This document shows positions 1-35,738 of a stretch of DNA of 64,000 nt, piece after piece. The first letter of the stretch is position 1; each line of letters begins with the position of its first letter. The notes below the pieces were generated by a model. That model ran no database searches, was not told the origin of the DNA, and saw only the letters and a list, made by a program, of their open reading frames with translations. This DNA comes from Paraphysomonas bandaiensis (lineage: Eukaryota > Protista > Chrysophyceae): the NCBI GenBank assembly GCA_965644295.1, contig CBFFRP010000128.1, positions 62,001 to 126,000 of the forward strand, read 5' to 3'. The translations under genes and the position numbers were made by a program.

Positions 1-68
1 CAAATCAAGGTGATTTCTTCTACAATGTGTTGAAGCAACCTTCTCTCACATGTTTGTCATTCGCAGCA
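1..68 (+). repeat. Left terminal inverted repeat (at least 68 bp)
   Basis: caaatcaaggtgatttcttc...tttgtcattcgcagca, a perfect inverted match to 3149-3216. Confidence 0.95.
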
Positions 69-78
69 CCATATTTAC

Positions 79-1109
79 ATGTATTCCGAGGCTTTCCGTC
101 TTTTAATTTTGGATGTGTTTGATCACTCTCTGGAAATCACAAATTCTGTGGCCGCATCACTAGATCATATATACGAGAAATACGATGTGTCCCAAAGCAC
201 AGTTAGAAGGTGGTTGGACAAATATCTGGACACTGGATCAGTTAAACCAGAGTCTTCACACCATTCGCACCACACTGTCATTTCACTCGAGCATATCAAT
301 TTTGTTAAAGAGTTGCTGGCAGAAAATTCAACTTATTCCAACGAAGAATTATGCGAAAAGGTTTTTAATGTGTACGGCGTGGCGTACTTGGAGCACCAAA
401 TGAAGCATGCCATGAACACTGAGGGCTATACCGTAAAAGTTTGTCAAAGAATTTCCCACAACAGAAATGAGGGCTTGAGGCGTTACTATAAGAATAATTT
501 GGCCCGATCATTGGATGAAATTCCAGCTCGCTGCTATGCTGTTGTGGACGAATCACATCTCCAGCCGGCAGAAGTTCTACGCCGATATGGGCGTTCACCA
601 CATGGCTACCCTGCCTTCGTGAGTGGTGATGTTATAGGCCACTTCAATCCCCAAGTTAGTTGTTGTGCCATTGCTGCAATGTCTATCGAAGGAGTTTTTG
701 CTGTTACTGTACACGAAGAAAATGTTGATCATAATACATTTCTAGATGCCCTAGAACATGACATCTTTCCCCACATGAACCCTTTTCCTGGGGATCGCAG
801 TGTGCTGCTCATGGATAATGCTTCGACGCACGTGAAGATAGATATTTATAATATGTGTGCAGAATTCGGCGTGATGGTTGTGTTTCTCCCCCTTATTCTT
901 ATGATTTTTCACCAATTGAACCCGTATTTCATCTTGCCAAAGCGCACATTAGAAAGAAGTGGGGAATTATGTACGCATATAAACCACTTGCAGCTCAACT
1001 ACATGAAGCTTTGTGGTCATGCTGTACTGCCGAAACTGCGTGCAATTTATTCAATCGAGTGGATATTACCGTTACTTGGAAAGAACAGTGCGAAGCCTGT
1101 AACTATTGA
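79..1109 (+). CDS. IS630/Tc1-like DD34E transposase with one frameshift near 890
   Basis: N-terminal HTH (VSQSTVRRWL), VDES and LLMDNASTH in ORF 79..1152. The final motif PPYSYDFSPIE is in the 855..1109 frame. Adding one C to the C-run at 888-892 joins them and gives D-x34-E spacing. Confidence 0.85.
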
Positions 1110-1463
1110 TCATTTGCAGATTATACTCTATACTCTACTCACTAGTTACTAATATAGATGTACTGATGATTGAATGTGATATGCTTGCTACTACTTCGTG
1201 ATAGAATATGATTAATTATACGCAATAGATTCAAGTAATATTAATAAATCAAAAAAACAAAATTTTGAAAAGTTTGTGGAGAATTTAAAATATCAGTTCA
1301 TACAGTTGCATACTAAGAAGAAAAAAGAAAATCGGTTAGTGAGTCTAAACCTAAATTTCGATGCATCGGAGCGTATGTGTTAAATTCATCCAAAAATTAC
1401 CAAGATTCGAAATAAATAATAAATGAGACCCGGCAGATAACGATTGACTGCAATCTGTTCTAT

Positions 1464-3149
1464 TTAGTAAGGGTCGGCAGGATAAGGAATTTCATACTCG
1501 GCCTCATATGCTATCCACTCACCCCTCTCATCCTTTCGCATTCCTTCTCCCCAGGCAAATCGCTGTTGGCGATAACGCGATGCATAATCAAAATCCCTGT
1601 GGCCGTGGTAATATTCTGGCGGGTAGCCATACAGCATGTGATGCGGATAATGCCGAGGAGCAGATCCCTGTGGGTAATACGGAGGAAGCTGCTGCTGAAA
1701 AGGAAAACCCCCAGTTGGATAAATAGGAGGGGGGTATACCCCGTAGGGCGATGGTCCACAGTCTGGTGGAAGGGGAAAAGGGACACCAAAAGAAGGGCCA
1801 CTACTTCCAGCAGGGGGAACACCAATTGGGATAGGCCAACCTTGTGCTGGAACACCTGGAGGAGCTGGTAGAGCAGGGGGCGGTGGTGGTGGCGGGTGTG
1901 GTCCTATTCGAACCGACGAGAATATGATATTTTCACGGGCTGCAGGTATTGGCTTATTACCCCCCTTGAGGTCACTATATTTTGGGAAGCCTTGACCCAT
2001 CCAATCCAACTTGAGAACCCATGTATCGAGTGTCGGGTCATACTCCAACGGGTCTTCAGCTGCACGTTCTTCACCTTCTAGGGTACTAAAGTATTCACAT
2101 AAGTATGTTCTTAACTGCGAGTAGCTCTTTACTTTCTTGCCCTCGGGAAGCTCGAGTAGATCTTTCAATTTGCTATCAGAAATCAAATCTTTCTTGCTCC
2201 AAGCTTTGGCACGACATCGCTCGATATGCAAGCGATTCCTTTGTGCTTCCAAATGACTCGATGTGTCCGCCGCATCATGTTCACTGGCGGTTGAAAGCTT
2301 AAGACCTGATTGACCACCGTGACCAAATCCTCTCTGCTTGCGGATACCACTTTGCATACTTTTTGGAGGATTAAGCTCGAAGAGTCTTTGACCCTCTTCA
2401 CTGCACTCGGTCATGGCTTCTTTCATTGCCGGTGACCAGTACGTGTTCATATCATTTCCTGGACGATGATTCAGGCCAACTTTGAAATATTTTGAGTGCA
2501 TGTATTTACAGAGGGGAAGATCATTCTGTTTATGTTTAACAAGCGCAAGGGAAGAATCAACAAAGCTGAGCTGTCTCTGTAGTATCACATCGTCTGGGCA
2601 ATTTTGGAACGGGACACCAGCAATCACCACATAGTGGGAAGCGTTTTCCCGACAACACTTCCTATCGTGATCTGTCTGGCGTCTAGTGGGAAGTAACGGT
2701 ATGTCCAATTCTCCATCGGGAGGGATCATGTGGAAATTACCAATGATACCAGAACTTGTTGCAGTTCGAACAGTAATACCTCTGCTGAAGTCTATCCTGA
2801 GTTGGTCGTTGAAGTCTGATAGTGGTGGCAATAACTTTTGATTATACGCTTGCCTCGCTACGCCCTCAACGAGTGCATGCAAGAATGCATGACCTTTGAC
2901 ACGCCAGATATTACTATCGTCTTCAAAAAGATTACCTCCTGGAATCTAAAAAAAATGTTATATTAAAACATCTTTAGCAGTAATTGCAGTAATTCTCACC
3001 CAAATCGTTAATTGGTCTGTCGAAGAAGTTAACTCGGACCGATTTACAGAGAATGCCTGTGCTTCCTCTCGAAATTTAGTCAAAGCGACAATTTTTACTC
3101 GCACCCACAGACCTTCTTCTATTTCAGAGTTTTGGCTGTCTGATGACAT
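1464..3149 (-). CDS. Transposon-borne orphan protein, 543 aa, 2 exons (3149-3000, 2945-1464), Pro/Tyr-rich C-terminus
   Basis: ATG at 3149. A phase-0 intron GTGAGA...TTTTTAG (2999-2946) joins exon 1 in frame to the 472-aa ORF. No family recognised. Confidence 0.8.
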
Positions 3150-3216
3150 GCTGCGAATGACAAACATGTGAGAGAAGGTTGCTTCAACACATTGTAGAAG
3201 AAATCACCTTGATTTG
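3149..3216 (-). repeat. Right terminal inverted repeat
   Basis: Perfect reverse complement of 1-68. Confidence 0.95.
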
Positions 3217-3681
3217 CAGTGCTTATCATGGTAATTGTGGGTTTATGGTACTGTTTAATGTAGGTGAGCAAGTTTTGTAATCGCGATCAAAGAAGATTGA
3301 AGAAGAGAGAAAAAAAAGTTTTTTTCACACCCGCTCTCCCTCACAATAGCAGTTGCAGTTCTTTGACGTATGTCATTTGTTCTGTAGTTGAATGTACTGC
3401 TGTGGTTCTATTATTGCAGCTGCCAATCAATGAGTGTATAGGTACAAGTATGGGTGGTCTGTACACGTATATCCAGCTCTCTGTATGAATGTATGTATAC
3501 ACGAGTCAAGCTCAGAGTGTTCTGTGTACATATATATGCATACATATCTGTAAGGAGGGGTCATTATATTGTACTCTAACACACAGCACCCCCACTATCT
3601 TCCAGTAATGTCTATAACCATTAACCCTCCTACACCTGTCCCTCCATTCCCCCCCTATCACTCCCTGTAGACTCATAAGGC

Positions 3682-4935
3682 ATGAATGTAAAGCGACATA
3701 ACAAACGGGATGTAAAGGACATAAGAGAGGTATATATACATACATAGACTCCCTCTAGTGGTCTGATAGGACTCATATAGATGCTGTATCATGACTTGAA
3801 TTGTTCATCTTCGACTATGACGGCTCGAGTGTTAAGCACACGTACAAGTGAAGAGGGAATGAACGAGAGTAAACTGCAGGTATGCTGCACTATTGCACTG
3901 TACTGTACGGTAGTGTGATTGTCTTATGTGTATTTGTTTTGAAGCTCGATCTGCATGTTTTGGAAGGGCCGTATAAAGGCGGCTCGTTTAGTATAGTCAT
4001 GACAGTTCGACAAGATTACCCCTTCAAAGGTATATATATTCCACTTCTGTACATGTTTATTTATTGTGTGGTGTGTAGCCCCATTACTATATTCGCCGGC
4101 ACCTCTATGGCACCCCAACATTGACCCGCGCACTGGACAGATTCACCTTCCGCTTGAATGGTCGCCAGTTCTGAAGTTGTACTCTGTGGCGTTTGCTGTC
4201 CAGGTAGGCAGTTTCACTTGGTACTCGTCCGTGATGCTCACTCCTCCGTAGCTGATGTTCTTAGAACCAAGTATGGAATGCGTGGTAAATGCAGAAGCGG
4301 GGCGACTTCATCAGTGTAACCCCGCAGAATTTGAGCAGTTCGTACAGTGTCTCTTGCGAGGGGGCGTGCATGGAGGTATTCCTTATCCGGACTACACTGC
4401 TGCATCTCACAGCATCAAATGCCGGAACGTGGTCGAAGATACCGATGGCTCAGACATGGCCATTTCTTCAGATAGTGGGTTCCTGGGTCATATTCATGGA
4501 GAGGAGCCCCAGCATCCCCTGGAACACCCGAACCCCTCCAGATCTCTTGACCTTTACCCAACTACCGATTGGTGTAACACGAAAAACACACTGTTACAGA
4601 AGCGGAAGGCCAATTTCGATCGAGGTAGCAGCAGCGGGGCAAGTGACAGTCTAAGTGTATGTGACGGAGAGGGTACCGATGAAAGCGATGGCGCTGTAGT
4701 AGTAACGAGATATGTGGATGAGCTCTCCCATCTCAGCAGTGTGCGCATATCTGATCCAGAGCGGAACAGGACAGCAACGAATGGATCACCTGCAAATTGG
4801 GTTTTAGGTAGCAATTCTGATAGTACGCTTAGATACAGAGCTGGTCATCAGTGCAAGCTTTTGAGGAGAGCTATAAGTCCGATTGGGTCTGCGGCCTGGA
4901 CGGGTATTCAAGGCCTTTCTCCAAACAATAGTTAA
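3682..4935 (+). CDS. Ubiquitin-conjugating enzyme (E2)-like protein, catalytic Cys replaced by His, long C-terminal extension; about 5 exons
   Basis: GPYKGGSF...DYPF, WHPNIDPRTGQIHL, EWSP and MFLEP...VNAEA motifs across short GT-AG introns. Confidence 0.8.
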
Positions 4936-5512: not shown

Positions 5513-7226
5513 GTAGTGAATGTCTGATTATTTAGCAATAGGCGTTGAGACCTTGCATCAATTAGTGGCTAGAAGAATGCTAGTCATACTAGTTAGACCA
5601 CTACCCGTAACTAATCAATACAAACTCTTTTATCCTACTATTTAACGCTACAGAAGCTGCTTGTGCGTCGCCGCAAGCACCAAGGTGCAACCACTTCCGT
5701 TCTTTTTGTGTGTTATGAGGCTCGCCATGATCGTGTGTCCTGGGACTCACCGGCGCTATTGATCTGGGGGTCTCCCTTTGGGATGGGTCTCCATTGGTTT
5801 TGGAGGGGGCTCAGCGTTCTGAATTAGGGTCTTGAGTGCACCTAGTTCCAGATGTGTGGGTTGAGGGTGGTGGGGATTGTTGGGAGGAGGGGTAGGGTTT
5901 GTAGTCTGTGTTACTGTGCTCCTGTGGGGCCGTGGGTGTAGATAGAGTTGTCGAAGCCGTCGGCGTTGTGGAGGTCTGGGCAGTCCAGTGCTCTGTCGGG
6001 TAGGACCTGTGAGGTGTGCACGTGTGTCTGGAGTCGGATACGCTGTGGGGGGTCGTCGTTGGACCCCTAGTAAGCGAAGGACTCTCGGACGTTGTCTTGA
6101 CTGACTGCGTTTCGGACGGGGTCTCAGGAGTAGCCTGGGCGGCCTTTTGGACATGGTGATATAGCGACAACCGCGATCCTGTAACATAAGCTTCGCTGCA
6201 GTGTAAAGCGGTTGCAGGAGATTAATAACCGCTGTTTCTAGGTTCCGTAGACTGTGTGCCGTCAGGTGGTTGTGTATGGCATCTCCGAAGACCGTTTCCA
6301 GTTGGGCTGCTGTGATGGTTCCAGTCCAGTATCTCTCGACCTGTGGGATGGAGGGATTCCAGGCTCTGCTGGAGAGTCTCCGTAGTGCAAATGTGATCCA
6401 GTTGGGTAAGGTCTGAGTTCTCTGTATTTCGTGGAGCACATTTTTATGCGATTGAAATGCAGTTTCCCTTATTTGGGTGATGGATTCATGTGTGCAGTCG
6501 AGGCACATATGTTTTAGGGAATCTAGTCGAAACCCGCAGCCAGAGCATGCGGCTTTGGTCAGCAGGTCAAGCCCCTGTTTGGTTTTGGCCCGGTTCCTCC
6601 CTATGCAGAAAGATTTGTCCCATGTCAGTGCCGTGTTGAGTATTCTTTGGCGTAGATTTGAGCTGAGTTTGTCTTTGGATGCACTGCCATCCGCTTGAGC
6701 TAGTTTGCGCGGGAGGTGTACTCCGCTATTGGTCCAGTAGCCAGGCGCTCGATCAGGATTGTGTCCGTAGCGTTGATCTCTGGTTGAAGTGTAGTTCTCA
6801 AGTGTCCTTAGGTCGCAGAGATCCTGGAAATTAGTAAGGAGTGGGCTAGAGTAGTATGGCCGTCTTGTACTGTGCATACGCCAGTGCCATAATCCAGCAG
6901 TTAGTAAGCGTTCGATGGCACTGTCAATCGCAATTGTACAGACAGTGTAGTTATTTTTTCCAAGGATGCGATCGACTTCATGCCAGTCTTCACCCGCAAC
7001 TGCGTCAGCAATATAGATGCCCTTGTCCTCAAACGTCCACTCCGTTTTTCATCTGTGGTACGTCGTTCGGGATGAGACCTCACCCAGGTCACCTGTCGTT
7101 TGCAATCTCTGCTGGCCGCGATGCTTTCAAGTAGTACCCCTTTTGCACGGTGACCGAGAGCTCTGCGTCTTGTGGAGAGTGCTTCCTCAGTGCGGGTGCA
7201 CACTGCCTGACAGTCTGTGTGGCTTC
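5513..7226 (-). mobile_element. 5'-truncated non-LTR retrotransposon (LINE) with RNase H and zinc-binding domain
   Basis: 13-bp TSD ataccgtaaacta at 5500-5512 and 7227-7239. RNase H motifs HTDCQ, WVRSH and GIYIADAVA; zinc-binding motif CSGCG...SLKHMCLDC; 3' UTR 5755-5513. Confidence 0.85.
5756..7226 (-). pseudogene. C-terminal part of LINE pol (RNase H plus zf-RVT-like), frameshifted
   Basis: ORFs 6901..7203 and 5756..6877 plus an intervening frame. RT is absent because of the 5' truncation. Confidence 0.75.
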
Positions 7227-27166: not shown

Positions 27167-27527
27167 ATCACGTCAGCAGCATGTGGATACCCATATATAC
27201 CCATATATACCCATACACCAGTATATAAGTACGGTGAAGATATCTTTTTGTTGAAATCATCGTATAGTTATGAATGTACTCCAGTATACTGTACTCCTGT
27301 ACATGTCTCACAGTACACATCTCAGATATAGATACTACAGCAGTGATCTGGACTATAGATATATACGCACATACATACATATATAATCACCATCAGGTAG
27401 CTTATTAACACACCCATTGAATGCTACTGTAAGTAATTCATGGCCGATAGAACAATCCAGTCTCGTATTTAGATAAGTGTTATTGTTAACTTACTGCGTA
27501 TACATACACATACATACATACCACTGC

Positions 27528-29244
27528 ATGGATTCAGAGGAGGTGTATATGAGTAGTAACGGAGATCAAGAGTCTACTCTCTACTATACTCAGATTGCTA
27601 TGGTTGAGTTTATTGGTACTTTCTTTCTTTCTCAACTAGTTGCATCCAAGTATGTGTTTGCTATAGACGGCAGTCAGCCGATAGCTCTTGGGTTAGGCTA
27701 TGTGGGGATATTATATGCAACATTTCCTATCAGTGGAGGTCAACTTAATCCTGCAGTAACTTGTGGTCTACTATATAGAAGGAAATTGAGTTTACGAGAA
27801 GGATTATGTTGTATTGTTGCTCAATTGCTTGGCGGGATATTTGCTGGGCTTGTTTCATATGCTATATTCAATAGTAACTGGGATAATGTTGGTCTGTATT
27901 TTTGCTTTTTTCGTTGTTGTACTCACACCTGCGCAGGGTATCCTGAGATCTCCGAGGGATTTCATGCATCAAATGCATTTGTCGCTGAAATACTCGAGTC
28001 ATTTTTGCTAGTGACAGTCTACATGAACGCCACGACAACTAAAGCACAGGAAGGTAAAAGTTTTTATGGAGTTGCAGTAGGATTTGTTGTACTATCCACT
28101 GCCCTCTTGGAGGCCACTCAACGTAGTACATGTAATAACTCTGCTGTGGCTATGCTTGCCCTTCTCCAGGGATCGTACAAGGACCTATGGGTCTATTTCT
28201 GCGCCCCACTTATTGGTTCGTTATTCGCTTGTTTAGCATTTCCTATACTTAACCCAGCCGAGGATCAGCACGATATCAGTACCGCTGCAAAGCGACTTGC
28301 CAGTCTACTTACAGAGTTCATTGGGACATTTTATTTGTCGTACACCGTTGGGATGAGTGTAAATGCGGCTTCTTTCAGCAACGGATTCTGTGCGATAGGG
28401 ATGATGGTCGCCTCATTGATTTACATGGGTATGGTACATCTTCAACAAATTTGTTACTTTTATGTGAAGTGTCGGCGAATTCATGCTGATTATTTTACTG
28501 GTCTTGTATATGACTTAAATATACCTTTGTAAAAACTTTTGTCATTGGAAGTCGAAATGTTCTTGCAACTGCAATAACGATTTTTTAGGGGCAGCCATCA
28601 GTGGAGCTCAATATAACCCTGCAGTTTCACTTGCCATTTTTATTCGACGACGTTGGTCATCATCATCAAGGGCACCTACTATGAAAGTAGTAGACCTTGT
28701 AATGTATAGCATTGTACAAGTGCTTGCGTCATTTGCAGGAGCTCTTGTTGCGGGGTATGTTAATCAGGATGTAGGAGGCATTACTACTTTTAAGGTCAAC
28801 ACAGATCACTATACTCTTTTTGCAGGAGTTGTTGTTGAAGCGTTGTATTCGTTTCTTCTCTGCTTCACCGTACTCATGAGCGGAACCCTTAGATATGTTC
28901 AAGGGAACAGTTACTACGGCATGGCGTGTGGATTTGTTGTTACAGCCGGAATCGCTGCCGTTTCTAATATATCTGGTGTGTGCTCTTCACATAACATAAT
29001 TTGGTTGATCATACATGCACTGCAATACGCTAGCTCTTTTTTTACTGATTTTTTAGGTGGTGTTTTTAATCCTGCACTTGGTGTTTCGCTTCCGATCATT
29101 GCAATGAAACATGTAAAGGACATATGGGTGTATGTCGTTGGCCCATATTTTGGTGCTGTAGTGGCGGCTCTTGTTGTCAATTTTGTTAGTTTTGTGGAAG
29201 ATGGGGCGGAAAAGACAGACCTGTCGCACTTGACGGCTTTCTAA
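27528..29244 (+). CDS. Tandem double-domain aquaporin (two MIP units in one polypeptide)
   Basis: Unit 1: EFIGTF, GGQLNPAV, loop E NNSAV. Unit 2: EFIGTF, SGAQYNPAV, GGVFNPAL. The intron at 28429-28588 splices in frame. Confidence 0.85.
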
Positions 29245-29749
29245 GTTGTCTTCCTATGCTACCAGTTGCCCGTGGTTTCACATGAGTATCTGAATATAAT
29301 TTCGTTGAAATTACAGTGATTATACATGTATTGTTTCCGTAGCACTGATCTTCATGTGACAATGATTGTATATAATAGATAACATATTTCCATATATGTA
29401 TCAAAAAGATCTTCTGTATATGCAACCTCTTGAAAATATGACATATATAGTCATGTGCCCTTGTGGAGTATAAGGTGATTTCGCTAGACTGTCACTAGCA
29501 AGAAAGTCTTACGTCGAATGTACGATAATTAGTCATATAAAATTGATAGTAGAAATAACTGTATAATTATAGAATTGCAACAAAAAACGTCACATTTTAC
29601 GACCTGCCAACCGTTATATACTTTGTATCCTGCTTTAAACACACGACATTGCAAACATGTATTTAGTATTCATACTAATGATTTGAAAAAACAAACACAT
29701 AAAAAGGTCAAAGTACGACAGGTCCATATGTTCTTTATCAAGCATATAT

Positions 29750-30839
29750 TCATATTTGGGATATGCTAGATGGCTCTACTGTTTTGATACCCTCCGCAAT
29801 TTCTTTATTTACGTTTCTAAGTTTCTTCTTATGTCGCCGTTTCTGTTTGACCATTTCAACATCTTTGTCTTTCATAGTATCATCAACAGGTTCCTCGTCG
29901 GTTTCCGAATCTGACTCCACACGATAACCAGTTGACTTTGCATTCTCAGGCATGTGGTACTTGTGCACATCTGCATTGCTACTGACGTCACCCTCATCTT
30001 CCTCCACGAATACTAAGTAACACATAGCCGCCAGTACCGCCCCTACCCCCGGACCAACATAATATATCCAGCTCCAGGAATCCCATAAGTTATCTCCAGC
30101 AAAGCTATTCACAACCGCTGGTCCAAATGTGCGTGCAGGGTTGATTCCACATCCCGTGAACGGGATTAGTACTATATGTGCAATAAATATGGAGAACCCA
30201 ATACAGAGGGGTGCGAGATTGGGCTGGCCATCAGTAGGCCCCCCACCACGAACTGCAGTGAGAAGGATTACAAGGCATAGCAAAAATGTACCCATCATTT
30301 CGAATAGAAATCCGTTTCCAGAGGTTAAGTCGCTATTCAATGAATTAGCACCCAGAGCAAAAGGAGGAGAGCCGACATCATCCGACCCCATACCAGATGT
30401 GGCCCCCCAAGTGAGAGCTGAACCGAGTACAGCGCCTAATAATTGAGCTATTATATACGCCACAGCACGTGGAGGACTGATCTGCTGAATCAAACATAGA
30501 AATAGAGTTACAGCGGGATTAATGTGTCCTCCAGATAGATTTCCTGTGCTGTACACTAGTACCATAATAGTCATACCGAATGCCATAGCTATAGGCATCA
30601 ACCGCCCCACCTGTATATATATATGCCACTGAGATCAATAGATCCACATATGAATCACTTACAGTATTCTCTCTAGCTACTCCATCTTGTGTGAGGAACT
30701 CTCCTGTAGCTATCACACTCCCAGTGCCAAAGAATAGAAACAGAGTCATAGAGAGAAACTCTGCAAACATTGCTCGTAATAACTCACGTGACTTGTTACA
30801 GTCATTAGGGAAACCCATTGATACCCATGAGATAGCCAT
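29750..30839 (-). CDS. Aquaporin (MIP), PIP-like, charged C-terminal tail, 2 exons
   Basis: AEFLSMTLFLF, SGGHINPAVT, TGCGINPARTFG. Confidence 0.95.
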
Positions 30840-31117: not shown

Positions 31118-31409
31118 GTATGTATGTATGTATGTATGTATGTATGTATGTATGTATGTATGTATGTATGTATGTATGTATGTATGTATGTATGTATGTA
31201 TGTATGTATGTATGTATGTATGTATGTATGTATGTATGTATGTATGTATGTATGTATGTATGTATGTATGTATGTATGTATGTATGTATGTATGTATGTA
31301 TGTATGTATGTATGTGTGTATGTATGTATGTATGTATGTATGTATGTATGTATGTATGTATGTATGTATGTATGTATGTATGTATGTATGTATGTATGTA
31401 TGTATGTAT
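31118..31409. repeat. (TATG)n microsatellite, left part of the interrupted tract
   Basis: Abuts the 5' LTR. Confidence 0.99.
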
Positions 31410-31616
31410 TGTGGCATGAAACCCCTGCCTTTTGGGAAAACCTTGGGTTTTTAGATTTGCGATCACTCTCCTTCAGGGTTTGCCTTAGGCACGTCCCTTC
31501 AGGATCGTGATATAGTGATAGGCAGTTGCTTCATGCCAGTCTATACATACATGATTCTTATATACATAATAACCATATATTCCTAGTCTACATTCTCTTG
31601 GTGTCTGTCAGCTACA
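31410..31616 (+). repeat. 5' LTR
   Basis: Differs from 35283-35489 at 2 positions by my reading. Confidence 0.95.
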
Positions 31617-31677
31617 ATATCGATATTAGTTTAACTGATATCAAGGAGAGCAAGGAAATGAAAACGCGTTTTTGAAC

Positions 31678-32077
31678 AAGAGTGTGAGGGGGTTCCTGAG
31701 GAGCCGAGACCCTCCAGTGTGATGGAAGGGAAGGAGGCAGGGGCCTCCGACCGAGAACTTCCAAAGAGTGATTTAGATTATGAGGGTGAGGGGGCTCTTG
31801 AGGAGCCGATAACCTCCAGTTCAACGGAAGGGAAGGAGGCACGGGCCTCCGACCGAGAACTTCCAAAGAGTGATTTAGATTATGAGAGTGAGGGGGCTCT
31901 TGAGGAGCCGATAACCTCCAGTTCAACGGAAGGGAAGGAGGCAGGGGCCTCCGACCGAGAACTTCCAAAGAGTGATTTAGATTATGAGAGTGAGGGGGCT
32001 CTTGAGGAGCCGATAACCTCCAGTTCAACGGAAGGGAAGGAGGCAGGGGCCTCCGACCGAGAACTTCCGAAGAGTGG
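31678..32077 (+). repeat. 102-bp tandem repeat, about 4 units, open as a 34-aa acidic repeat
   Basis: EGKEAGASDRELPKSDLDYESEGALEEPITSSST units spaced 102 bp apart. Confidence 0.95.
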
Positions 32078-32159
32078 TTCGTATGGAAAATACTCCAAAG
32101 GTGAGTTCTGCGAATTATACTCGGCTGTCATGGGTTGAAATGAGCAGGGTGGGAAAAGG

Positions 32160-35043
32160 ATGTGCAAGGCTCTGCTTGATACTGGCGCGTCGGCGAACTT
32201 TATTAGTAAAGACGTTGTACAGTGGTTGATAGAGAGTGATTCTGTTCCAATACCTGTAATTAAGAATATTGCGGGTGGCTTGAAGTCTGCTTTTGCATTG
32301 TGTAGGAGGGGTGTACCCTTTGATGTAAAAATCCTTTCGGAGGCAAAGTAGCCTCCGGGGTTGCAAGCTAGGTTAACTGCTTGGGAATTAGATTTAAATT
32401 TTGATATTATATTAGGAATGCAGACTGTACGAGAACTAGATTTAGTTGTACATTGCCCTAATGCTTTATGAGCGCGGACAGCGCATGGCGGTTAGCCAAC
32501 GTAGTGGGAAACAGCGCATTCCTTCATGCGAGAGAGAGAGATGATCAGTCTGGGGGAGCCGTGCCTCTTGGCCTGGGCGTGCACGCGTCTTACCCTTGTG
32601 GGGGGGAACGAGCCAGCGTTCGTCTACCGCTACGCAAAAATTATGACCTTGGGGTGCAGAGAGAGTTAGCTCCACTCGAGGTAGGAATCATGAAGGTGGT
32701 GGCGAAGATTGGTCATACCCAGTGGAGGAGCAGTTGCTCTCTCTGGGGGTCGAGGACCCTACTAACTTCTCAATCAGGTCCGCAAGGGACCGAGAGAATA
32801 TGAAGGAGATTCGCGATGATCAATTGGAGTCTATTGATTCTGATTATTTAAGTGCGGAAAAGGATCCGCAAGTGCTTCCAGATAAGATATTTGGATCCCC
32901 GAGTTTACAGAGTCGTATCCAGGATGTCCTGGGGGAATACAAGGAGATATTCCGATTAGAGATTCGTAAAGGGGAACCAGCCAAGCTGGAGCCTTTTGAG
33001 TTAGAAGTCCGGAACCCGTCTGACACGTGGTTGATACCGGCACATAAATTGCCTCCCCGGAGGTTAGACAGGAGTCGCCAGCGCGAGCTCCAACATTTGG
33101 TGGATAAGCTAGAGAAGTTAGGAGCAATCCAACTTAGCACAGCCACTCATTACAGTCATCCCTTTGTGGTGCCGAAGCCAGATAATAAAGGGCGGTGGGT
33201 AATAGACTATAAAAACTTAAATCGGGTCACGACTTCAGAAAGCTGGCCAATTCCAAATATAAGAGATATGATCTATAGAATTGGTGCCAGGGGGTAAACG
33301 ATCCCGTGCTGGGTTGCCTTTATTACTCAAAACGGGGTGTACGAGTGGCTCCGGCTCCCCATGGGTTTAAAGTGCGCTCCATCTTATTTCCAGAGGCAAA
33401 TGCAAAATATAGTGCTTGCGGGCCTGGTATAAAATGAGTTTTCTTTGCATGCAATATTGGGAAATAATACAAAAAGTCTCAAGCGCATCGGAAAGTGCTC
33501 GACTGGTCAGAGGAGGCCACGGTAGCATTCGATGAGCTGAAGGAGCGAATTCATGAGTGTCCCTTATTATTTTTTATGGATGATGTTTTCCCCATCTATC
33601 TATATACTGATGCATCAATAATAGGGATTGGGGCTCATTTGGTGCAAATCGTGGAGGGTCACGACGCACAATAATTGATATGATTAGTAAGACGTTCGAG
33701 TCAACCTTGGCGAAATGGCATACCTGTGAGCAGGAAGGATTTGCCATTTTTGTATGCCTTGAATAAGTGGGAATACTTGTTGAGAGATCGACGTTTCATT
33801 GTTCGAACTGATCACGACAGCTTAAGCAAGAACACGGTATCTTAAGCGTGTGCAACGCTGGTTTATGTGTTTTCAGTCGTTTGATGTACTTAGCAGGAGA
33901 ACTTAAGGTGATTGCTGATGCTCTTAGTCGAATTTGTGGGGTGGACGCATCCGATGAGATCGGTGAAAATATCTGTTCTTCACTCGAGCAGTGCCTTGAG
34001 GTGGAGCAGGGAACAGAGTGTGAGCATATCCTTAGTCGCTGCTGGAAAGTTATTTAGACCTGTCACAATAGTGTAGTGGGTCACCATGGGGTAGAACGAA
34101 CCATGGGAAAGTTGCGAAGGAGCAACAACATTTGGAAGAACATGCGTCAGCATGTAATAACTTTTATTAAGAGATGTGTGTGTTGTCAGAAAATGTCAAC
34201 GTTGAAACCATCTGTGTGGGTTCGTCCATTTACACTGTCGAAATACTCGATGGGAGAATGTATTTATATGGATTATATTGAAGGCTTGATGCCGGATGAA
34301 TATGGGTTTACGAGTATATTAGTGCTGATGGATGCCTTCGCGAGGTGGGTTGAGTTATTCCCCACGAAAGGCATATCGGCGAAAGATACAGCCCGGGCTT
34401 TATTTTGGATAGAAAGAATTTATCATCTCGGGAGAGTCGAGATTTATCACAATGGGTGGCAGACAGACTTGTCGCTCAGGATAAGGTTAGGGCGTATGCA
34501 CGACAGAATTTGCGTATCCGAGACCAGCATCAAATTGAGTCTAGTATGCCGGAGGGTATATCCTCATATCCGGTAGGGGCTTTGGTGCTTGTGGAATATC
34601 GCCAGAACTCGTTGAGGAAGGGTCCTCCGAGCAAGTTATTACCATATTTAAAAGGCCCCATGAAGGTGGTGGCAATAGATGGTGGAATTTATACAGTGCA
34701 GAGTCTTTTGACCAAAGGCACAACGAAGCATCATATCTCGAAGTTACGCCCGTTCTGTTATGATCCGAGGGTTGAAGACCCGGTGCAGATTGCGTTACGG
34801 GATGACACAGAGGGCGCCGAGTTTGTGATGGAGAAAATAACGAACATGCGAGGGGATGTAAAAGGGTCACGATTTGACTTGTACTTTGAGGTGTTTTGGT
34901 CTAATTATAGTGTACCAACTTGGGAGTCTTGGAAGACAGTGCGGGGTTCAGAGGCACTGCTAAGATACCTGAGGTCCCACTCTAACTATCTTGTTCGGGC
35001 CCTATTACCCAAGAGAGGAAAGAAGCGCTCCAGGTCAAGTTGA
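32160..35043 (+). pseudogene. Degenerate pol: protease, partial RT, RNase H, partial integrase, chromodomain
   Basis: ALLDTGAS; RWVIDYKNLN; LPMGLKCAP; YTDAS; GHHG...CVCC; FEVFWSNYSVPTWES. Many stops and frameshifts; the RT YxDD motif was not found. Confidence 0.9.
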
Positions 35044-35282
35044 TTCGACGGAAGAAGAAGCCCAATCCGAGGAGGAGGGATCGTCGAGTTAGTTTAGGGA
35101 TTATGAGTTTTGACGGTTAAAATCCGCTCTGTCCTTGTAGTGGACACCTATGATAAGGTTCTCGTAAGTCAGAATAATCCTTGGAGTGATATGTAGGGTA
35201 GTAGTGGTGAGTTTTTTAGGAGTAGTAGTTTTCGTAGGCTAAATGCCAGGTTTTTTTCAAAAAAAAAGGAAGGAAGGGGTAG

Positions 35283-35489
35283 TGTGGCATGAAACCCCAG
35301 CCTTTTGGGAAAACCTTGGGTTTTTAGATTTGCGATCACTCTCCTTCAGGGTTTGCCTTGGGCACGTCCCTTCAGGATCGTGATATAGTGATAGGCAGTT
35401 GCTTCATGCCAGTCTATACATACATGATTCTTATATACATAATAACCATATATTCCTAGTCTACATTCTCTTGGTGTCTGTCAGCTACA
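35283..35489 (+). repeat. 3' LTR
   Basis: Preceded by the purine tract and followed by GTAT. Confidence 0.95.
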
Positions 35490-35738
35490 GTATGTATGTA
35501 TGTATGTATGTATGTATGTATGTATGTATGTATGTATGTATGTATGTATGTATGTATGTATGTATGTATGTATGTATGTATGTATGTATGTATGTATGTA
35601 TGTATGTATGTATGTATGTATGTATGTATGTATGTATGTATGTATGTATGTATGTATGTATGTATGTATGTATGTATGTATGTATGTATGTATGTATGTA
35701 TGTATGTATGTATGTATGTATGTATGTATGTATGTATG
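35490..35738. repeat. (TATG)n microsatellite, right part of the interrupted tract
   Basis: Abuts the 3' LTR. Confidence 0.99.

Follow-up and report, generated by a model that had tools for sequence, protein, structure and literature searches.

Introduction

Tc1/IS630 elements are the textbook one-gene transposons, and Fanzor carriers are among the multi-gene exceptions. Accessory partners are known from DNA transposons such as CACTA (TnpA) and Harbinger (a MYB protein). Maize MuDR belongs to the Mutator superfamily, which has a different transposase and longer target duplications. MuDR contains two convergent spliced genes and terminal inverted repeats (TIRs) of about 200-215 bp that carry promoters (PMC3440606). 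Multi-ORF IS630/Tc1 elements have been described in ciliates, namely TBE and Tec (PMC7325037, PMC4724952) and Sardine, Thon, Anchois, and Tennessee (PMC7325037, PMC4724952, PMC3464196); they are germline elements with three or four ORFs (PMC7325037, PMC4724952, PMC3464196), and TBE has telomeric C4A4 ends and an ANT duplication (PMC4724952). The functions of MURB (PMC3440606) and of the TBE 22kD and 57kD proteins (PMC7325037, PMC4724952) are listed as unknown.

This study concerns an IS630/Tc1-type element of Paraphysomonas bandaiensis at the start of the window, i.e., the whole stretch of 64,000 nucleotides that was analysed. Its transposase gene faces a convergent gene, here referred to as ORF2. 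Tara and MMETSP records place the host among marine protists, and the Atlas cluster closest to its eIF3c is mostly oomycete, which points weakly to the stramenopiles. The initial annotation proposed that the family has two components, one of them an uncharacterised accessory protein, and this is supported by the presence of both genes in 13 of 13 copies and by four further families in which the two genes are linked.

Results

Extent and copies of the element

The window opens within the element: its first 68 nt (1-68) match 3149-3216 perfectly in inverted orientation, and when the upstream DNA is added the TIR becomes 198 bp, still perfect (G000:C128:61871-62068 and 65149-65346, the latter being window 3149-3346). 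A perfect TIR of at least 68 bp had thus been recognised correctly, but the extent of 1-3221 given by the initial annotation has to be replaced: as the upstream DNA yields a 198-bp TIR, the element ends at 3346, not at 3221, and it starts 130 bp before position 1. Its length, taken from the alignment of assembly copies, is 3,476 bp. The features are as follows, in window coordinates.

1..68, plus strand: left TIR, inner 68 bp of 198 bp; the outer 130 bp lie before the window and are preceded by a TA
10..66, plus strand: leader (5' UTR) intron in the left TIR, 57 nt, GT-AG, spliced onto the transposase (RNA-run contigs L176-L179)
79..1109, plus strand: IS630/Tc1-type DD34E transposase of 343 aa with an HTH at the N-terminus; frameshifted (-1) in this copy
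1110..1463, no strand: AT-rich spacer (3' UTRs) separating the convergent stop codons, with a nested MITE in one copy
2945..1464, minus strand: ORF2 exon 2, 493 codons and stop
2999..2946, minus strand: ORF2 intron, 54 nt, GT-AG, phase 0, at a position common to relatives L065 and L155
3149..3000, minus strand: ORF2 exon 1 (50 codons), with the innermost right-TIR base serving as the A of the ATG
3149..3346, no strand: right TIR (198 bp), matching the left TIR perfectly in inverse orientation
3207..3151, minus strand: leader intron in the right TIR, 57 nt, GT-AG, spliced onto ORF2 (RNA contigs L073/L074)
3208..3346, minus strand: shared non-coding leader exon, CT-rich, and outer right TIR, with one upstream ATG at 3229
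3347..3348, no strand: TA target-site duplication

The complete assembly (669 contigs, 62.6 Mb) was found to contain 12 full-length copies at 99-100% identity, a 13th copy split by an insertion of 1 kb, and a decayed relative on C375 with 76-91% identity. All 26 TIR matches in the assembly fall within the 13 copies (both counts being lower bounds), each of which has both genes, and no MITE or ORF2-less derivative with these TIRs was found in this assembly-wide search. The TIRs are perfect in 9 of 12 aligned copies, the termini read TTGTGAGG, and a TA duplication borders both sides of every copy. Since the flanks are unique to each copy, the insertions are independent. The element is an IS630/Tc1-type DNA transposon with TA as its target, autonomous and mobile in the recent past; its recent activity, previously surmised from the TIRs, is evident from 13 independent copies that are more than 99% identical and from splicing in RNA data. 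The spacer of the C217 copy contains a nested MITE (L031:1933-2967), which is 1 kb long, non-coding, and hAT-like, with short TIRs of its own and an 8-bp duplication, CTAAGAAG.

Transposase

The catalytic triad D157, D246, and E281 is of the DD34E type and invariant among aligned relatives. The transposase matches Pfam DDE_3 (PF13358, E 9e-10) as well as HTH models, and the intact 343-aa protein (L009) reaches 102.1 bits with the NCBIfam IS630 model NF033545, for which the cut-off is 100. The triad and the IS630 type are therefore as initially described, but the frame is not intact in the window copy, in which a -1 frameshift at 888-892 had been missed. The C run at this position has 5 C in the window copy and 6 C in intact copies, and the shift occurs before E281, so that the third catalytic residue lies in another frame. 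Five C are present in nine of the 13 assembly copies. In ORF2, the G run at 1729-1734 is likewise one base short (5 G for 6) in nine of 13, and neither shortening tracks the subgroups of copies defined by substitutions. Four assembly copies have the 343-aa frame intact, as does every short-read and RNA contig that was checked; the eight full short-read contigs checked and RNA contig L073 have 6 C and 6 G, and ocean metagenome contigs encode both proteins intact. Because the short-read, RNA, and ocean contigs checked carry intact genes, the shortened runs are probably homopolymer undercalls in the assembly. Real decay was judged an unlikely cause of the frameshifts.

Other IS630-like transposases with 32-50% identity occur in the genome at C249:10982-11929 (open frame of 349 aa), C37:50723-51430, and C219:240750-240959, and the genome-wide ORF2 search gave no match at any of the three.

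A leader exon and intron shared by both genes

The transposase-side splice junction (10-66) was seen in four contigs from other runs. With the leader spliced on both sides, the two genes share one leader exon and one intron, which are encoded twice by the TIRs. By sequence inspection, a donor/acceptor pair just before the ATG is also present in L065/L066/L166, L072/L169, L075, and L155, and in the relative L072 both ATGs lie within the TIR. A promoter inside the TIR is likely, and is put no higher than that because L073 continues beyond the TIR for 144 nt of flanking microsatellite sequence.

The leader contains a single ATG in ACC-ATG context, located at 3229 on the minus strand; the mirror copy in the left TIR immediately precedes position 1. 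In the spliced mRNAs, this ATG starts a uORF that is out of frame and overlaps the main start. The uORF comprises 25 aa on the transposase side and 17 aa on the ORF2 side and is possibly a translational brake on both genes. The parts of the L065 and L166 leaders that were read showed no such ATG.

The ORF2 protein

ORF2 encodes 543 aa from the ATG at 3149, with no internal stops. Spliced RNA contigs encode the identical protein (P0015; L073/L074), in agreement with the uninterrupted convergent gene and clean intron first reported, and MMETSP transcripts represent ORF2 (P0014) and a deletion allele (P0022), the frameshift of which coincides in position with a 13-bp deletion in the C241 copy. 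An upstream ATG at 3167 was discarded as a start, as it lies inside the spliced leader intron. Exon 2 encodes the rest of an N-terminal alpha/beta region and then a basic linker, an NLS-like stretch that precedes a conserved helical C-domain (about residues 270-395); the tail (401-543) is of low complexity and rich in Pro, Tyr, and Gly.

Nothing significant was found for ORF2 in Pfam, NCBIfam, and PHROGs, in PDB sequences (two profiles), in the ESM Atlas by features, or in structure searches (Foldseek against PDB and BFVD; VIA, wide and in a second look; Atlas). The protein had initially been left unmatched to the cargoes of TBE/Tec and Fanzor-carrying elements, and the profile and fold searches likewise came back empty. 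As judged from these comparisons, ORF2 is a new protein family without a fold match. A by-eye likeness of the C-domain to MBD or SWIB was not supported by any profile or fold search, nor was a winged-helix hint by re-alignment. Exact-pattern scans of IMG/VR, which have limited reach, returned no viral relatives of the transposase or ORF2.

Homologues, co-inheritance, and selection

Within the assembly, neither the single protein nor a profile found an ORF2 match outside the element. Word-indexed protein searches cover only proteins between 0.55 and 1.75 times as long as the query, so shorter or longer kin may exist; among 1.84 billion representatives, a full HMMER scan found six ORF2 matches. 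Homologues with about 20-41% identity are convergent to related transposases in four other families, which substantiates the linkage of ORF2 to DDE transposases. P0021 (41% identical to ORF2) is convergent to a 63%-identical transposase on L065, and P0024 (32%) to a 53%-identical transposase inside TIRs (L067-L069). L072 has a 45%-identical transposase, a three-exon partner, and TIRs of at least 127 bp, and L075, which was found by the transposase query alone, has a 50%-identical transposase and an ORF2 homologue with an HMM E of 5e-20. L155 is a damaged ORF2 homologue; its first 28 nt are those preceding the P0004 transposase on L166, which suggests a further family.

The ORF2-bearing transposases form one clade (SH-aLRT 99) in a quick tree, which included unnamed sequences only and in which two clade members are on contigs too short to score. 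Five-taxon trees of the transposase, ORF2-N, and ORF2-C have the same topology, with one weak ORF2-C node (37/61). Between ORF2 homologues pS is 0.71-0.88, i.e., saturated, versus a pN of 0.32-0.53, and the single unsaturated pair has a dN/dS of 0.19, so that selection on ORF2 is purifying. ORF2 diverges faster than the transposase (41 versus 63% identity). Every homologue has a low-complexity tail, which is Pro/Tyr-, Gln-, or Arg-Ser-rich depending on the family, as well as a basic NLS-like stretch ahead of the C-domain. On the evidence of these alignments and trees, ORF2 and this transposase clade have been passed down together for long enough to saturate synonymous sites; the linked homologues, congruent trees, and purifying selection together indicate that ORF2 is not recent cargo.

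Three more distant IS630-like transposases (L078, L080, and L167; 30-32% identity) also face a convergent ORF, which in L078 and L080 terminates in Cys-pair zinc-ribbon motifs. For the L078 partner, the similarity to the ORF2 N-region is borderline (hhalign E 0.03, above 60 of 60 shuffles). Homology of the L078 and L080 partners to the ORF2 C-domain was not significant (E 0.29 and 0.23; 8 of 60 shuffles as high).

Insertion sites and neighbourhood

Seven of the 12 copies lie in (TACA)n/(TATG)n, versus 5% of TA sites in the window, a background that consists of this one window. The two fully read flanks of the relative L067/L068 are not TACA tracts. Remains of a Ty3-like LTR retrotransposon with RT, integrase, and chromodomain-like ORFs (window 31118-35738) are flanked on both sides by (GTAT)n tracts; as this element also sits in such a tract, the microsatellite bias may be host-driven. 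Elsewhere in the window, a spliced ubiquitin-conjugating-enzyme-like gene (3800-4935) starts some 450 bp beyond the element's right end, and a cluster of aquaporin/MIP-like genes occupies both strands at 27477-30610. The element is flanked by two related non-LTR retrotransposon-like C-terminal fragments with the same end residues (window 5756-6877, minus strand, and L033:2338-2853).

Discussion

Proposed role of ORF2

One TIR feeds the DD34E transposase mRNA and the other the ORF2 mRNA, via the same leader exon and intron. The transposase, to judge from its family, would bind the TIRs, excise the element, and integrate it, and the TIRs would also hold promoters, by which the two genes would be co-regulated. 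ORF2 is in all probability a helper of the element's own life cycle (roughly 0.85). More tentatively, and at somewhat less than even odds, it may be a nuclear factor that sustains the expression of TIR-driven genes against host silencing. As such it would act on the chromatin or transcripts of the element's own TIRs, its low-complexity tail would recruit host transcription or RNA-processing machinery, and it would work like VANC or TnpA of plant elements, without homology to them. This proposal is made because of the activation-domain-like and RS tails, the basic NLS-like linker, the divergence faster than that of the transposase, and the CpG excess of the decayed copy (CpG transitions 12.2% versus 6.4%, Fisher p 0.003), which is compatible with host CpG methylation of the element family.

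The decayed C375 relative contains an inverted duplication of the ORF2 region (L032:2546-4506), with inner 303-nt arms that are 99% complementary and outer arms at 90-92%. This hairpin-forming structure recalls maize Mu killer and could be a small-RNA source against the family.

Other roles can be considered for ORF2. It might be a transpososome cofactor or target-selection factor that binds the transposase and aids integration, as has been proposed for MURB and the Harbinger MYB protein; this is the chief rival, although less likely than not. In its targeting variant, insertion would be biased towards (TACA)n/(TATG)n microsatellites, where it does little damage, and the seven copies found in such tracts speak for it. 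However, an unrelated LTR element in the window has a similar location, so that host selection or chromatin may cause the bias; Tc1/mariner transposases favour TA-repeat contexts unaided; and the bias is calculated against one window and is not seen in the L067/L068 flanks. Doubtful, and less probable than a plain cofactor role, is the more far-reaching idea that the element is one branch of a broad and so far undescribed group of two-gene IS630-like elements in aquatic protists, in which a mirror-image TIR cassette co-expresses the transposase with a new-fold ORF2 that is required for transposition and steers insertions into microsatellites; if true, ORF2 would be a protein-guided targeting module for a TA-specific DDE transposase. 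The convergent partners of L078, L080, and L167, and the borderline N-region match of the first, bear on this idea. An RNA-level helper, acting in leader-intron splicing, export, translation past the upstream ATG, or RNAi shielding of convergent transcripts, is improbable: the Arg-Ser repeat tails of three homologues (P0021, P0024, and L155) resemble those of splicing factors, the leader intron recurs just before the ATG in the relatives listed above, and convergent genes can give rise to antisense RNA, but no RRM or other RNA-binding domain is present and the tails of the window, L072, and L075 proteins are Pro- or Gln-rich.

The low copy number (13 copies and one relic) would also suit a negative regulator that controls copy number, or a host-benefit cargo kept by selection on the cell, and purifying selection by itself gives no sign of the effect. 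Such roles have a lower probability still, given that ORF2 has no known enzyme or defence domain, that it is never apart from the transposase on contigs long enough to tell, and that repressor-loss derivatives, which would be expected to spread, were not found. Least probable by far is a recently captured host gene or neutral passenger. ORF2 has spliceosomal introns like a host gene, but its start is tied to the TIR, and it is conserved beside related transposases at synonymous saturation. Host capture was rejected: there is no host paralogue, no match elsewhere in the assembly, and ORF2 is not single-copy. A helper of the element itself, tentatively a nuclear factor against silencing, is the preferred reading.

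Comparison with known systems

The element shares with IS630/Tc1 DD34E transposons (ITm) the DD34E RNase H-like transposase, the N-terminal HTH, the TIRs, and the TA duplication. In typical members the transposase is the sole gene, whereas here a second conserved gene is present in all copies and in four related families, and the 198-bp TIRs contain a leader exon and intron that serve both genes. Among the IS630-like sequences sampled, the clade of this element stands apart in the quick tree. Fanzor/TnpB-carrying Tc1/mariner elements likewise have a second gene beside an ITm transposase; Fanzor/TnpB has a RuvC D-E-D triad and a zinc finger, whereas ORF2 has no RuvC or zinc-finger match and its homologue alignment contains no conserved acidic triad or invariant Cys pairs.

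The ciliate elements combine an IS630/Tc1-type transposase with extra ORFs, partly of unknown function, and TBE genes are under purifying selection, as is ORF2. However, TBE has three ORFs, a zinc-finger/kinase protein, C4A4 ends, and an ANT duplication, as opposed to two genes, no Pfam match for ORF2, ends reading TTGTGAGG, and a TA duplication here. Tec, Sardine, and Thon have a tyrosine recombinase ORF and long or palindromic TIRs, whereas ORF2 has no Pfam, NCBIfam, or PHROG match and the TIR is 198 bp. Anchois and Tennessee differ in TIR length (about 22 nt versus 198 bp), and their hypothetical ORFs may be absent from the protein libraries searched. VANDAL with VANC (PMC10398659), CACTA with TnpA, and Harbinger with its MYB protein are also DNA transposons with a fast-evolving, family-specific accessory protein; they belong to other superfamilies, no homology was detected, and they serve as a functional model only. 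No VANC-type internal tandem-repeat target array was found in the element. In the open full text searched (subscription journals and Repbase being outside the search), there is no description of this two-gene clade and no entry with this cargo. The two-gene layout is new with this cargo, while multi-ORF Tc1/IS630 elements are already known in ciliates.

The closest architectural analogue is maize MuDR, in which a transposase and a protein of unknown function are likewise convergent and each launched from a TIR. MuDR has a MURA-type transposase and a long target duplication, whereas the transposase here is IS630-type and the duplication is the 2-bp TA; no sequence link between ORF2 and MURB surfaced in the searches. 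The clade represents an independent two-gene Tc1/IS630 design that converges on MuDR and goes beyond it in placing a spliced leader for both genes inside the TIR. Because the family is small (3.5 kb), young, and expressed, and occurs in wild ocean samples, it makes the role of transposon accessory genes experimentally approachable.
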